Shown here: in pieces, positions 11,273 to 17,635 of the stretch
Layout of the letters: the number at the start of each line of letters is the position of its first letter
How positions within the stretch are numbered: position 1 is the stretch's first letter
NCBI GenBank assembly: GCA_025594325.1
Contig: JANHCV010000001.1
Coordinates: forward strand, 4,464,001 to 4,528,000
Direction of reading: 5' to 3'
DNA: 64,000 nucleotides
From: Blastocladiella emersonii ATCC 22665
Lineage: Eukaryota; Fungi; Blastocladiomycota
Notes under the pieces: generated by a model
The model's database searches: none
Told to the model about the DNA's origin: nothing
The model's input: the letters and a program-made list of their open reading frames with translations, nothing else
Position numbers and translations under genes: made by a program

Positions 11273-13405
11273 ATGACCGCCGAGCACCGCCTCGCCGCCG
11301 CCCTCGAGGTCATTGACGAGATGCGCGCCGAGCGCGCCCGCGCCATCTCGGCGCTCAAGCTCGCCGAGGAACAGCTGAGCATCATGGCCGACGAGCGCGA
11401 CTCGATCGAGGCCGCCCACGCCGACACCGTGCGCAAGTGGCAGCGCGAGCTCGCCACGAAATGCATCGAGATGGAGGAGATCGCCAAGCGTGTCCCGACC
11501 TCGTCCGACCTGCAAAAGCTCCGCGCGTCGCTCGTCGAGGAGGTCCACGCCGAGGTCCGCTCCGAGATGGCGCGGATCAAGGACGAAGCCGAGCGCGCGA
11601 GCGCTACCGCGGCGAAGCTCCGCGAGGAGAACCTCGCGCTCGTCACGGACGCGGCGGCCAAGGCGCGTGTGCTCGAGGTGGAGCGCGAAAAGGAGCGCGT
11701 CGAGGCCATGACCAAGATCCGCGACCTCGAGTACCAGCTCGACCAGGCGCGTGCCGCGCTCGCGGTCAAGGGCGATACGGTGTCGCCGACGGCGACCAAG
11801 CTACAGACCCAGGTCGCTGAGCTTGAGCTTAAGATGACGCACCTGCTCGCCGAGAACGAAGATCTCCGGTACGTCCACTTGACCCGCACATGCTCGCACC
11901 CTGCTGACCGCCCACCCACGTGTAGCACCGCGAAAGCCGAGCTCGGCGCACAGCTCGACGCCGAGAAGCGCAACCACAGCCGCCAGCAGCTCGAGTACAA
12001 GTCGGCGCTCGAGTCGATGAAGGTGGACCGCGACCTGGTCACGGCCAAGCTGACGCGCGCGCACGAGGAGCAGCAGGTGCTCATCAACAAGTCGCACGAG
12101 CACGCCACCCACCTCGCCAGCGTGCAGGTCGAGCTCGCTGCCGCGCGCCGCGCCCTCGACGACAAGTCGCACCAGCACGCCGCCACCGTCTTCTCGCTCC
12201 AGTCCGAGCACGCCCAGGACCGCGTCAAGTGGGAGCGCGCCCACCGCGAGATCGAGGCGAGACGTGACGCGGCCGCCGCGGAGCTCGAGCTCGCAAACAA
12301 GACGCTCGAGGAGATGCGCACCGAGGCCCGGGTCCTCGAAGCGCGCGCGGCTGAGGCGGCGAGGGCGGCGCCGTTGCCTGAGCATCTCGAGGAGCTGCGG
12401 CATCTCCGCCAGCAGAACGCCGAGGTACGTCCCCAAGAGCTTGCTTACCGCGACCCTAGTTCACCGTCGTACCCCATCTCCAGCTCAAGTCGCAGCTGGG
12501 CTCGCTGCAGGGCCAGCTCGACGAGCAGCGCACGCACTTCCTGGCCGAAAAGGAGTCACTGCTGCACAAGCTCAACGGGCTCAAGGCCACGGTGGACGAG
12601 CTGCAGCACGATCTCGACGACACCAAGCGGCAGGCGAGCGACACCGAGGCCACACTCGCCCGGACGCGCGAGGTCGAGGCGGCGCTCCGCGAGGAGGCGA
12701 AGCGGACGCGCGCACAGCTCGACACGACCATGGACGAGCTAACGGCGCTGCGCGAGGCCGAGGCGTGGAACCGGTACGCGGTTGCCCGGCTGGCGGGGTG
12801 TCCCGTCATAGCTGATTTGTTTTGTGTGTAGTCCGCAACACGAAGAGGACGTCAAGCGGCTCGACGAGCTGCGGCACCAGGTGGCCGAGCTCAAGTCGAC
12901 GCTCAAGAACGAGCGCGACGAGGCGCTTGCGTCGATGCAGGACGCCAAGGTACGTCCTGGTCCACGCCCTCGTCCCGATCAGCTGGTGACTATGCGCACG
13001 CGTATCGTAGGCCGTGTGGCTCCAGTCGCAGCAGTCCCTGACGACCCAGCTCAACACGATCACGGCCGAGCACACACAGCTCAAGGACGCCTACTCCAAG
13101 GTACAACTCCTTGTAAACGACAATGCGTCCGTCTCCTCACCGTGACCGATCTTGTTTAGCTGAAGGCGACGGCGCAGGGCAAGCTGAGCCAGTACAAGTC
13201 AGCGGTGGCCGAGCTCGAGACCAAGCTGCACGCGTGCGAGGCGCGGTGCGCGCAACTCAGCGGCGAGCTCGCGGGGAAGCGCGAGCGCGAGGCCAGCTCG
13301 CGGCGGGAAACGTCCAAGCACCGCAAGGAGTTTCTCGACTTTCTGCGCCGCGAGATGTCGACGGGTGCGGCCGACGTGCGGCCACCGGCCGAGGGCGGCG
13401 TGTAG
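11273..13405 (+). CDS. CEP83: Centriole distal-appendage coiled-coil protein CEP83/CCDC41 (multi-intron)
   Basis: RELATKCIEMEEIAKRVPTSSDLQKLRASLVEEV..KLREENLAL matches my recollection of CEP83 (ELVEKTKDLEEMK..TPQKLELLRAQIQQEL..KLRYEHTFL), and VLINKSH matches FLINKLH. The protein is coiled coil throughout. Confidence 0.75.
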
Positions 13406-13647
13406 CCGTTGGGTGGACGGGATTAATAGACGCGAGCTAAAAGAAAGTGTCTCCCGCGGACGCGCCCTGAAACGTGCGAGACGCGTCGGGCTGCAGTTCC
13501 CACGCGTCGGTCATGTGAGCGCCTCCGCTCGCGATCCGTTTCCTGCGCGACGCGTCTCCTCCGCCTTCTCCCTCTCCTGCCGGCCAGAGAGTGCATGGGC
13601 TCGCCCTGCAACACACCACGCACCGAACCACACGCACGCACCATCCA

Positions 13648-16466
13648 TGACGTCCGCGACCGGCGCCGCGGCCCACTCGGCCATCCGGCGCACCGTGTCG
13701 TCGCACACGTCGCTCGCGGCGCGCTCGAGCGGGCTGTTTGACGGCGACGACGACCCACGCCCGCGCCACTCGTCCGAGACGCTGCACGCGCAGCTCCCGC
13801 CGCGGTCCGTGCGCCGCACCCGCTACACGAGCGGCGACACCACCGTGCTCGGCGGCAACTACGACGCGCTCGGCCGCGCCGACGACAACGCCGGCAGCGC
13901 GTGGGACCTCGCCGCGCTGATCCGGCTCGGCCGCGAGCAGTTTGACCTGATCCTCGGAATCACCGCGTCGCTGCTGTGGACCGTGACCACGTTCGCGCTC
14001 CTCAACACGGCCTCGGGGCTCGCCATTGGCCCGCTGCCCTCGGCGCTCGCCGTCGGCCACGCGTCGGCCCATGTTCTTGCGATCCTCGCGTGGCAGCTGT
14101 ACAATCACCGGTTCCTCGTGGCCAGCCGCCGCCGCCGCGGGCTCGCTGAGCCGCTCGCCCCGGCGCCCATCAAGGAGCTCGACGAGGATGAGGAGGATGA
14201 GGACTCGCCGGCCGAGAAGCGCCGCGACAAGGAGCCGCTCCTCCCGACATTCAACGTGTCCTCGTCGTCGTCATCGCGCAGCCGGTCCGATCTGCCCACG
14301 GCCACTACGCTCGAGGCGCGGCTCACGCAGCTCGTGCGCCAGGCCGGCCAGGTCTACGCGGTCCCGGTCTGCGTGCACGGCGTGCTCAAGGGCGGCGCGC
14401 TGCTCGCCACCGTGTGGTCGCTCGGACAGGGACAGATCCTGTGGTATGCGTTCGGCAAGGTGCGCGCTCACCCCCTGCTCCGATGCGTGTTGGAAAATGA
14501 TGCTGACGATTGATCCAACCAGATCGCCTTCACCGGGATCCAGCTCCTGACGGGCCCGCTCGCCACGGTTGCGCTCGCGACCATTGCCCTCCTGATCCAC
14601 TCGACAGCATCCGACAGCCTGCTGCGGCCCATCATGTGGGTCATGGCGAGCCTGCTGATGCAGCGGCTCGACCAGGTCCTCGCCGTTGTCCTCCCCGCTC
14701 CCTCGACCTCGCGCGCCTCGGCCGGCATCTCGGAACAGCAGCGGACCCGCGCCATTGCCGGGATCGCCCTCGGCACGACGCTCGCTGCGCCGTGGTGGAC
14801 CGGCGAGCTCGCTTCGCTCCGCGCCCCGCCGCTCCTGTGGCAGCTGCTCGCGCAGTGGGACGTGCTTGCGCTCAACCTCGCGGCCGCCGCGCTCATGGCC
14901 GTCACCACACACTCGCCCGTCGTGACGCGCGTCCGGCTCCCGTTCCGGTGCGTCGGCCAGCTCGCGCACGACGTGGCCGCGGTTCTCGGTACCATGGCGC
15001 TGCTGTCGACGACGGGCACGGCCGCGGAGCCGTCCGGCGACGAGACCGCGTCGCCGTGGGGCATGCTGTACGCGACCATGGTCATGCAGGTGGCCATGTT
15101 CATCCGCATGTTCCTGTGGAAGCCGCACTCGGTGCACATGGCGTCGATCCACCCGGCCACGGCCGGCGCCGCGTGGTGGATCTCCGGGTCGCTCGCCATG
15201 CGCCAGCGCCAGTGGCGACTCCGGTGCGTCGTGGCCGCGCTCGCCGCGACCGCCGCCGTCGTGTTCCGCATCGCCCTGCTCGGCGCCACCGACCGCGCGC
15301 ATCTCGGCGCTGGTAAGCTCGCCGACCCCGCCACGCAGCACGCGGTCCTGATGCCGATGCACGAGCCGTGGGTGAGCATGCACCGCGGCGCGAGCTGGGT
15401 GCTCCCTGTCGCCGAAACCACGGCCCCGGCGGCGGATGAGAAGCAGCAGGTAGACGCGGACGATGTGATCCTCGGCGTCATGGCGCCGTCGGTCGCGTCG
15501 GTCCCCGAGGGCCTCGCGATCGCGGGCCTGTGGACGTCGGCTTCCGGCGACTCGAGCACCGCCACCGCCACCACCAAGTCGCCCGACTGGCACCTGTACA
15601 CGTCGAACCAGGCGACGCTCAACGCGGTCAAGGAGGCGGGCCAGCGCGCGCGCATCCCGGGTCTCTCGCACATGGCGCTCGCCCCCTCGCCCGCGTCCGC
15701 GCTCAAGCAGATGCTCGACGACCGGCATAGCGGACACGGGCCGACCGCCAGCGGCGGCGGGCCGCGGTGGCTCGTGCTCGGCAGCGTGCACGACGTGTGG
15801 ATCCTGCCGACCCTGTACAAGCGCCTGTCGCAGCTCGCGCCTGACCGCGAGTGGTGGCTCGAGGCGGCGCCCGCACCCGCGTCGGCAGCGGACAAGAAAG
15901 GCGACGCGCCCGTCACGATCCTCTCGCGCAACCTCGCCGCACGCGTGCGGTTCCAGTGCAAGGACACGACCGAGTCTTTGGGCGTGTGTCTCGCGACGCG
16001 GCTCAACGCCACCCGCACGCTCCTCCCGACGGGGACTGCGCCCGACGCCGTCGCGTTCCGCGCGCCCGACGTCGCGCCCGTCCCGCTCGCGCTCGCGTTC
16101 CGCGTCGCGACCAAGCTCGGGCTCGCGGCCGCCGCGGCACGCGTCGACAGCGCGTGGGCGAGGGCGTGGACGTGGCCCGTGCCCGGGCACGCCGGGTGGT
16201 CGCTCGAGGTGACGCACGGTGTCCGCGCGCAGCTCGTCGGGCCTGCGAGTTCTCGGCCCGCTATCGCGTCGACGGCCGCGGACGCGGCAGCGCGGTACCG
16301 CCTCGCGGCGATCCTGCCGAACGGCGCGCTCGAGTACGCGCTCGACCCCGCGCCCGCGACAGCCGTCCCCGCCGGCTCGCCGCCCGTCTGGCCGCCGCAC
16401 CGGATCGTCGTCGACTGCTCGGCGGCGAGCGGGGTGCGCGGGTCGACCGTGTGCGTCGCGCCGTGA
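13648..16466 (+). CDS. Fusion: SLC35/TPT-like nucleotide-sugar-transporter membrane domain + type II anchor + Fringe/DUF604 (GT31)-like domain (1 intron)
   Basis: N-terminal ~10 TM with TPT-like W......LN....P..L..GH and THSPVVTRV. C-terminal VILGVMA, RWLVLGSVHDVW.LPTLYKRLSQLAPD, TILSRNL...QC....LGVCLA and WSLEVTHG follow the GT31/DUF604 motif order. Confidence 0.6.
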
Positions 16467-16512
16467 GCTGCGCGAAGGCGCGAGTTTTGTTGATCACATC
16501 TTTCACACTTCT

Positions 16513-16542
16513 CACATCACATCACATCACATCACATCACAT
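16513..16542 (+). repeat. (CACAT)n pentanucleotide microsatellite
   Basis: cacatcacatcacatcacatcacatcacat, downstream of the 16466 stop. Confidence 0.9.
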
Positions 16543-16808
16543 CGCCGAAAATGGAATCGAGTATCTGCGTCTGGAGGGGGTCATGCGGGCCATGCGCGGC
16601 ATGCATGGTCGGTTGGCGGGGTGGCGTCGCGGAGAGCGGGACGCGAGACGCGTCGGTGATGTCGGCGATCGCCACGTGACGGTCGCGCCGGGGCTTGCCG
16701 AAGCTTCAAGACGCGTGTTAGCGCCGCCGATAAAAGCGCAGCGCGCCCACGTATCCTCGCTCTCCCCAACTGCCCTTGTAGCAACGTTATCAACCACCTA
16801 ATCCAAAA

Positions 16809-17635
16809 ATGACCCGCAAGTTCTTCGTCGGCGGTACGATCGGCCTGCGACCGCCCTCCGTCTGCCAGTGGGAGCACGCACCAACAACCCGCCGTCGCCG
16901 CGTCTAGGCAACTGGAAGCTCAACGGCTCGACCAAGTTCAACGGCGAGCTGGTGCAGGTGCTCAACGACTCGAACATCCCCGCCGAGAAGGTGGAGGTCG
17001 TTGTGGCCCCGCCGGCCGTGTACCTGGCGCAGATCCGCGCGGCGCTGTCGGACTCGATTGCCGTGTCGGCGCAGAACTGCTACCACGAGCTGTCGGGCGC
17101 CTTCACGGGCGAGCTCAGCCCCGCCATGCTCAAGGACATTGGCGTCGCGTGGACGCTGCAGGGCCACAGCGAGCGCCGCGAGTACTTCAAGGAGTCGTCC
17201 GAGTTTGTCGCCAAGAAGACGCTGTTCGCGATCCAGCACGGCATCAAGGTGATCGCGTGCATCGGCGAGAAGCTCGAGGAGCGCGAGGCCGGCACCACCT
17301 TCGACGTGGTCTCGGCACAGCTCGCGCCCCTCGCCGCGGCGCTGTCCGAGGCCCAGTGGGCCGACGTGGTGCTCGCCTACGAGCCCGTCTGGGCCATTGG
17401 CACCGGCAAGGTGGCCACGCCCGACCAGGCCCAGGACGTGCACGCGTACATCCGCAAGTGGCTCGCCGACAACGTGTCGCCCGCGGTCGCCGACCACACC
17501 CGCATCATCTACGGCGGCTCGGTCAACGCCAAGAACTGCGCCGACCTCGCCACTCGCGCCGATATCGACGGGTTCCTCGTCGGCGGCGCCTCGCTCAAGC
17601 CCGAGTTTGTCAACATCTGCTCGGCCCGCCTTTAA
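16809..17635 (+). CDS. TPI1: Triosephosphate isomerase (1 intron)
   Basis: MTRKFFVGG|NWKLNG, GAFTGE, GHSERR, AYEPVWAIGTG, IIYGGSV, DGFLVGGASLKP. Confidence 0.98.

Follow-up and report, generated by a model that had tools for sequence, protein, structure and literature searches.

H9P43_001693 is a two-exon gene of the fungus Blastocladiella emersonii ATCC 22665 that lies on the plus strand of contig JANHCV010000001.1, within the 64,000-nucleotide stretch that was analyzed here (the window, to which all coordinates refer). It encodes a lineage-restricted multi-pass membrane protein of 918 amino acids (aa) with a long C-terminal tail. The account favored here, which is put forward tentatively, is that this tail descends from a type II protein of the Fringe/DUF604 kind (glycosyltransferase family GT31), became fused to a multi-pass body, lost its metal site, and probably no longer works as a transferase.

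According to this account, the protein would start with a cytosolic N-terminal tail, continue through about ten membrane helices, between which one large cytosolic loop lies, and reach a final, strongly hydrophobic anchor helix that is preceded by RQRQWRLR. The parts from Met497 to the end would be arranged as in a stand-alone type II Fringe/DUF604 protein, with a basic tail, an anchor, a stem of ~60 aa, and an α/β domain. Such an ancestor would have been joined to an upstream multi-pass module, and the tail would subsequently have degenerated with the loss of the metal site and of most family signatures.

The C-terminal domain and the Fringe/DUF604 family

The candidate relationship rests on the soluble domain behind the anchor helix and on two segments within it that were placed on the family by profile alignment with hhalign:

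15282..16463, plus strand, C-terminal soluble domain (aa 525–918), in which strands alternate with helices and which contains four Cys and a single NAT sequon; candidate degenerate GT31/Fringe-like domain
15765..15860, plus strand, match to the DxD strand (aa 686–717), RWLVLGSVHDVWILPTLYKRLSQLAPDREWWL, aligned with the family pattern RWFVMGDDDTvF..NLV.VLsKYDH.q.YYI
16194..16235, plus strand, second hhalign match (aa 829–842), GWSLEVTHGVRAQL, aligned with the family block WtfSVSwGYsVqi

Fringe-type genes were collected from viral and metagenome contigs with a degenerate DNA pattern for W-F-x-x-x-D-D-D-T, and 50 further DUF604/Fringe proteins were gathered with one non-plant open reading frame (ORF) as seed. 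Representatives were verified with Pfam (L001, Fringe at 1e-10; L092, DUF604 at 3e-103 and Fringe at 1e-17). A second viral scan for C1GALT1-like seeds returned too few new sequences to help. The best local match of the tail is formed by aa 686–717, which align with the DxD strand and the helix that follows it (score 25.3–25.9, P 0.015–0.018). This segment was recovered by three different profiles (P 0.059 with the non-plant profile; hhalign probabilities of 1–3%) and was also aligned by a phage Fringe family (P 0.35). The second match at aa 829–842 has a score of 15.2 and a P of 0.41 on its own; it is colinear with the first, and the chain of both scores 40.5. In shuffle controls, the single score was reached in 0 of 400 and 3 of 320 cases and the two-hit chain in 1 of 320.

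The same family was indicated by language-model features (Atlas), where the C-terminal half fell to Fringe (PF02434)/Galactosyl_T (PF01762) clusters, reaching 0.93 over 168 shared features, and where the neighbors listed for this half are essentially all GT31. In the calibration of this search, a first match of at least 0.9 is obtained by 4–10% of shuffled proteins, and 168 shared features fall into the “chance or distant” range. The Atlas match is thus a lead, not proof. An earlier reading of the DNA, made from the letters alone and called the sequence-only reading below, had named four motifs in the tail in Fringe/DUF604 order. All strings that it quoted are present in the protein (LLW at residue 109, THSPVVTRV at 400, RQRQWRLR at 498, VILGVMA at 586, RWLVLGSVHD at 686, TILSRNL at 736, and WSLEVTHG at 830), and its motifs all occur in verified DUF604 proteins in the same order and at similar spacing, which is a description by eye and not a test. 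Of the four motifs, only the segment from RWLVLG to REWWL was picked out by a profile of real family members, at P ~0.02, and the set is not confirmed as exceeding chance.

A number of results weigh against a GT31 origin of the tail. The Pfam search (E ≤ 10) of the whole exon, the C-terminal half, and four sub-fragments found no Fringe, DUF604, or Galactosyl_T domain, and the PF02434/PF04646 match that had been expected for this half is absent. When hmmsearch was run with --max and an 80-sequence DUF604 profile, the real domain was unmatched and ranked below many of its shuffles. A chain of position-specific scoring matrices over the eight most conserved blocks of the family gave z = 0.95, with 95 of 600 shuffles scoring as well. 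The hhalign probability of the best match is ~3%, with P between 0.015 and 0.06, and one of 32 pieces taken from other genuine genes of the window equaled its score, so that the honest significance is ~0.02–0.03. The 168 shared Atlas features lie slightly below the level that is typical of true family members, and a giant-virus Fringe protein aligned elsewhere in the domain and not at aa 686–717. No PDB chain was matched by the C-terminal half with phmmer (E ≤ 10). The AlphaFold models are too poor to reveal a fold: the single-sequence model of the C-terminal half (pLDDT 39, pTM 0.28) alternates strands and helices in an unreliable three-dimensional arrangement, and the Foldseek comparison with PDB, which had been proposed as a check, returned noise. 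The claim of a GT31/Fringe tail thus keeps some support from the Atlas score, the hhalign match on the DxD strand, and the colinear second match, and falls short of ordinary significance.

The metal site is missing at the aligned place. In the hhalign alignment, RWLVLGSVHD stands opposite RWFVMGDDDT, which puts S-V-H in the position of D-D-D, as the sequence-only reading had observed. The sole D.D in residues 525–918 is a DAD at 582–584, which lies ahead of the first strand. Since S-V-H replaces D-D-D, the tail is unlikely to be a canonical Mn-dependent transferase; a function, if it has one, would be non-catalytic, such as binding or scaffolding. The alternative of a pseudo-glycosyltransferase, which had been offered next to substrate channelling, fits better than channelling does, with its GT31 half holding weakly.

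Several genes that were met during the collection are of note in their own right. A salt-marsh metagenome contig (Ga0181568_10023057, L082:1357-4278, plus strand) carries a 974-aa ORF with two tandem Fringe/DUF604-like domains. The first of these, RFFALGDASTVF, has a naturally degraded DxD and the second retains WFVVGDDDT, so that a DxD-less copy stands beside an intact one. Six IMG/VR contigs of 10–39 kb (L002, L005, L007, L008, L011, and L012) encode small phage-contig proteins of ~216 aa with WFIIADDDTW, which are matched by Pfam Fringe at E values from 1e-4 to 4e-6 and represent Fringe-like glycosyltransferases in viral contigs. A Spatholobus suberectus protein that is named “DNA polymerase eta” at NCBI (P0032) carries DUF604 and Fringe domains and is probably misnamed.

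Gene structure and protein layout

At the locus lies one genuine gene with two exons, and its composition gives good support for a single coding sequence. Its parts and those of the predicted protein layout are as follows:

13647..14459, plus strand, exon 1 (aa 1–271), with the ATG at the onset of a GC content at third codon positions (GC3) of 0.93; the translation equals residues 1–271 of the database protein
14460..14522, plus strand, intron of 63 nt with a GTGCGC donor, a CTGAC branch-like site, and a CAG acceptor
14523..16466, plus strand, exon 2 (aa 272–918 and stop), by translation, with coding composition from the acceptor on
Exon 1, N-terminal tail of ~95 aa, rich in Arg, Ser, and Asp (residues 1–100 polar)
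Exon 1, transmembrane helices (TM) 1 and 2, then an acidic Ser-rich loop of 89 aa that starts with RRRR, then TM3 onward
13947..15281, plus strand, multi-pass membrane region (aa 101–524) that spans the intron, from hydropathy and rough insertion-energy scans
15198..15281, plus strand, Met497-RQRQWRLR and helix 506–524 (Kyte–Doolittle hydropathy 2.39; lowest insertion-energy estimate of the late helices)

The single spliced frame runs from an ATG at 13647–13649 to a TGA at 16464–16466. Excision of the intron, which contains an in-frame TGA and has a GC3 of 0.62 compared with 0.92 and 0.89 in the adjoining exons, yields exactly the database protein (GenBank H9P43_001693, “hypothetical protein”, 918 aa; P0001), on which the full-length protein analyses were based. 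The GC contents at codon positions 1, 2, and 3 are 0.69/0.54/0.93 in exon 1 and 0.70/0.58/0.93 in exon 2, similar to those of the neighboring triose-phosphate isomerase gene (0.64/0.45/0.94). Outside of the gene, GC3 drops to 0.65 over the 111 nt that precede the ATG and to 0.51 past the stop. The first in-frame ATG of exon 2 lies at 14634, and GC3 is already 0.89 over the 111 nt between it and the acceptor; coding in exon 2 therefore begins at the splice acceptor. Across the junction of the membrane half and the C-terminal half, GC3 stays at 0.92–1.0 (0.98–1.0 immediately 5′ of Met497), and 14523–16463 contains neither an in-frame stop nor a dip in GC3. The unbroken GC3 of 0.93 through both halves marks them as one coding sequence, which bears out the single spliced ORF of the sequence-only reading; of the coordinates given there (13648–16466), the end is correct and the start is one base off.

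Two kinds of alternative structures were considered and rejected. An additional intron at GTAAG 15313 would require acceptors that give lengths not divisible by three, and GC3 stays at 0.88–0.92 there. In the long minus-strand ORFs (709 and 548 aa, within 14271–16400), GC1 is lower than GC2 or the phase is wrong, and the translations are rich in Arg and Gly, which identifies these ORFs as by-products of the 93% GC3 bias and not as genes.

The protein is predicted to cross the membrane many times before the soluble domain begins. Between aa 101 and 524, hydropathy, a rough insertion-energy scale, and low-confidence AlphaFold helices give 9–12 membrane segments, and the single-sequence AlphaFold model of the membrane half has 12–13 helices at a pLDDT of 45. 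The multi-pass region of the sequence-only reading is thereby retained, and its count of ten helices plus one gives way to an estimate of 9–12. Arg-rich loops (149–237, 328–347, 399–413, and 498–505) alternate with neutral or acidic ones (435–450). An N-in topology with about eleven helices and the C-terminal 394 residues outside of the cytosol would fit these flanking charges. Among the late helices, helix 506–524 has the highest hydrophobicity, and four Arg precede it, in agreement with the type II anchor that had been proposed to follow the multi-pass region. This helix most likely places the C-terminal domain in the lumen or outside of the cell. From Met497 onward, the chain looks as though the N-terminus of an independent type II Golgi protein had been kept, which suggests an old gene fusion or possibly an internal start.

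The flanking genes encode a long coiled-coil protein (11273–13405) and triose-phosphate isomerase (16810–17635), and a link of either to glycosylation is not evident. A short (ACATC)n microsatellite lies shortly past the stop, at 16510–16545.

The membrane half, the search for relatives, and rival explanations

The protein is an orphan that is restricted to its lineage. In an exhaustive phmmer search of the whole protein against 1.84 billion representative proteins, it found itself only, with no paralogue and no SLC35 protein. A word-index search of 5.8 billion clusters likewise retrieved only the protein itself with exon 2; residues 560–918 had no match there at E ≤ 10. The locus search in JGI metagenomes gave 599 pattern matches, none of which was confirmed as a relative. 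For the exons, the halves, and eight fragments, Pfam at E ≤ 10 returned nothing above its cut-offs; PhoR, CinA, and chorismate synthase appeared as noise. Because there are no homologs, an alignment for structure prediction could not be built.

The membrane half falls into no recognized family, and calling it a nucleotide-sugar transporter is not justified; its helix count is the only property that is compatible with SLC35/TPT. Pfam at E ≤ 10 found no TPT, EamA, UAA, or Nuc_sug_transp domain (PF03151, PF00892, PF08449, and PF04142) in exons 1 and 2 or in residues 95–300, 230–530, and 95–530, and the PF03151 match that was expected for the N-terminal half is thus missing. No solved transporter was matched in a phmmer search against all PDB chains (E ≤ 10), and the Atlas search with the membrane half gave no usable neighbor. 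The SLC35/TPT hallmarks that had been read from the sequence therefore gained statistical support in none of the tests (Pfam, phmmer against PDB, exhaustive phmmer, and Atlas). The 9–12 hydrophobic segments permit a division into five plus five helices. A comparison of the putative five-helix halves gave a Smith–Waterman score of 36, which equals the shuffle mean of 36; this absence of internal similarity is uninformative, since inverted repeats of such kind are seldom visible in sequence.

The tail might also have no GT31 ancestry at all. In that case, the protein would be an orphan multi-pass protein in which the Fringe-like strings and the language-model neighbors arose by chance or from the composition of an Ala-rich, fast-evolving chain. 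This is a serious possibility, if a somewhat doubtful one. It is favored by the formal homology tests, which are all negative or marginal, by the natural control piece that reached an equal hhalign score, and by the Atlas calibration, in which neither the first-match score nor the number of shared features stands clear of chance. It accounts less readily for the convergence of the motif reading, the Atlas features, and the profile alignment on a single family, for the position of the best profile match on the most conserved element of that family with a colinear second match behind it, and for the order of Met, basic residues, membrane helix, and stem that is found in type II glycosyltransferases.

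A different reading holds that the gene model is faulty, so that two transcription units, a multi-pass protein and a type II protein starting at Met497, share one open frame or the intron is spliced otherwise. Met497-RQRQWRLR and its helix do resemble a genuine type II N-terminus, the public annotation is an ab initio prediction by funannotate (PMC9730499), a look-up of RNA runs for the stretch listed none, points that also count against the favored account, and the DNA (64–77% GC across the window, 72% in the gene region) readily yields long open frames such as the 709-aa antisense ORF. The reading is nevertheless quite improbable given the frame without stop or GC3 dip from 14523 to 16463, the high GC3 directly ahead of Met497, the canonical intron signals with coding composition restarting exactly at the acceptor, and the low-GC3 spacers of ~240 and ~340 nt that separate the gene from its neighbors and have no counterpart between its halves. 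The sequence-only reading itself had proposed an import-and-transfer unit, in which a working or former nucleotide-sugar transporter passes the imported donor sugar to a working or pseudo GT31 domain in the lumen. The helix count and charge pattern permit ten helices plus one anchor, and the weak GT31 signal of the tail would fit as well. Against it stand the absence of any transporter domain, solved transporter, Atlas neighbor, or SLC35 protein in the searches described above, the 89-aa insert between TM2 and TM3, the lack of an internal repeat signal, and the missing DxD for canonical GT-A catalysis. The N-terminal half fails every transporter test that was run, so that channelling by an active transporter–transferase pair is unsupported, and the fusion of these two activities is considered quite unlikely.

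The favored account of a GT31 relic on a multi-pass body could be extended further. The gene may be a decayed paralogue within a family of nucleotide-sugar-transporter/GT31 fusions that is specific to blastoclads. With the chemistry of both its halves lost (no transporter signature and no DxD), its product would serve in the Golgi as a multi-pass scaffold or as a pseudo-enzyme that binds glycans, comparable to a Cosmc embedded in the membrane. This extension is regarded as unlikely. If the GT31 relic is real, the protein would be an example of a glycosyltransferase that was fused to a polytopic module and turned into a pseudo-enzyme, which would bear on the organization of the Golgi glycosylation machinery and on the re-use of dead enzymes. 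What the locus mainly demonstrates is that by-eye motif calls in an Ala-rich orphan of 72% GC reach a P of only ~0.02 when real family members are used for comparison.

Comparison with known systems

No paper on transporter–glycosyltransferase fusions in nature was found in a literature search. The Fringe-like DUF604 proteins of plants and fungi (PF02434 and PF04646, CAZy GT31; for example, the Pfam-verified metagenome ORF L092:230-1969 and P0008–P0051) share with the tail an anchor of type II-like character and a ~60-aa stem. The first strand-like motif follows the anchor at 62 aa here and at 65 aa in the verified DUF604 protein L092. The order of elements is also shared and comprises a first strand that is hydrophobic and contains G, RW-V-G, LS...D...aromatic pair, -ILSR-L-, two Cys, and W[ST].xV[ST].G, with motif spacings of 100/50/94 aa here compared with 91/55/120 aa in L092. 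The DUF604 proteins differ in having a short cytosolic tail before the anchor, whereas about ten additional membrane helices precede it here. They also keep D-D-D and match Pfam, whereas the tail has S-V-H and no Pfam match.

SLC35/TPT transporters such as Vrg4 and the CMP-sialic acid transporter resemble the membrane half in their rough number of helices, and both ends of the first ten helices would be cytosolic in the protein described here. Similarity in sequence, profile, or language-model features is not found. The transporters are compact, with ~320 aa, whereas the region here covers ~425 aa and includes the 89-aa insert, and the Lys of their N-K motif is missing.

In bacterial AT3-SGNH acyltransferases such as OafA and OafB, a single chain holds ten membrane helices, an eleventh that serves as a link, and an α/β domain outside of the cytoplasm. 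They are analogs in architecture only and have no sequence relation to the protein here, in which Pfam shows neither SGNH blocks nor an AT3 match.

Cosmc (C1GALT1C1) is a GT31-like, DxD-less chaperone of T-synthase. It is a single-pass type II protein with clear homology to C1GALT1, whereas the protein described here is multi-pass and its homology is putative. The likeness lies in the tail, which, like Cosmc, would be a GT31-derived lumenal domain that lacks the DxD and serves in a role other than that of a transferase.

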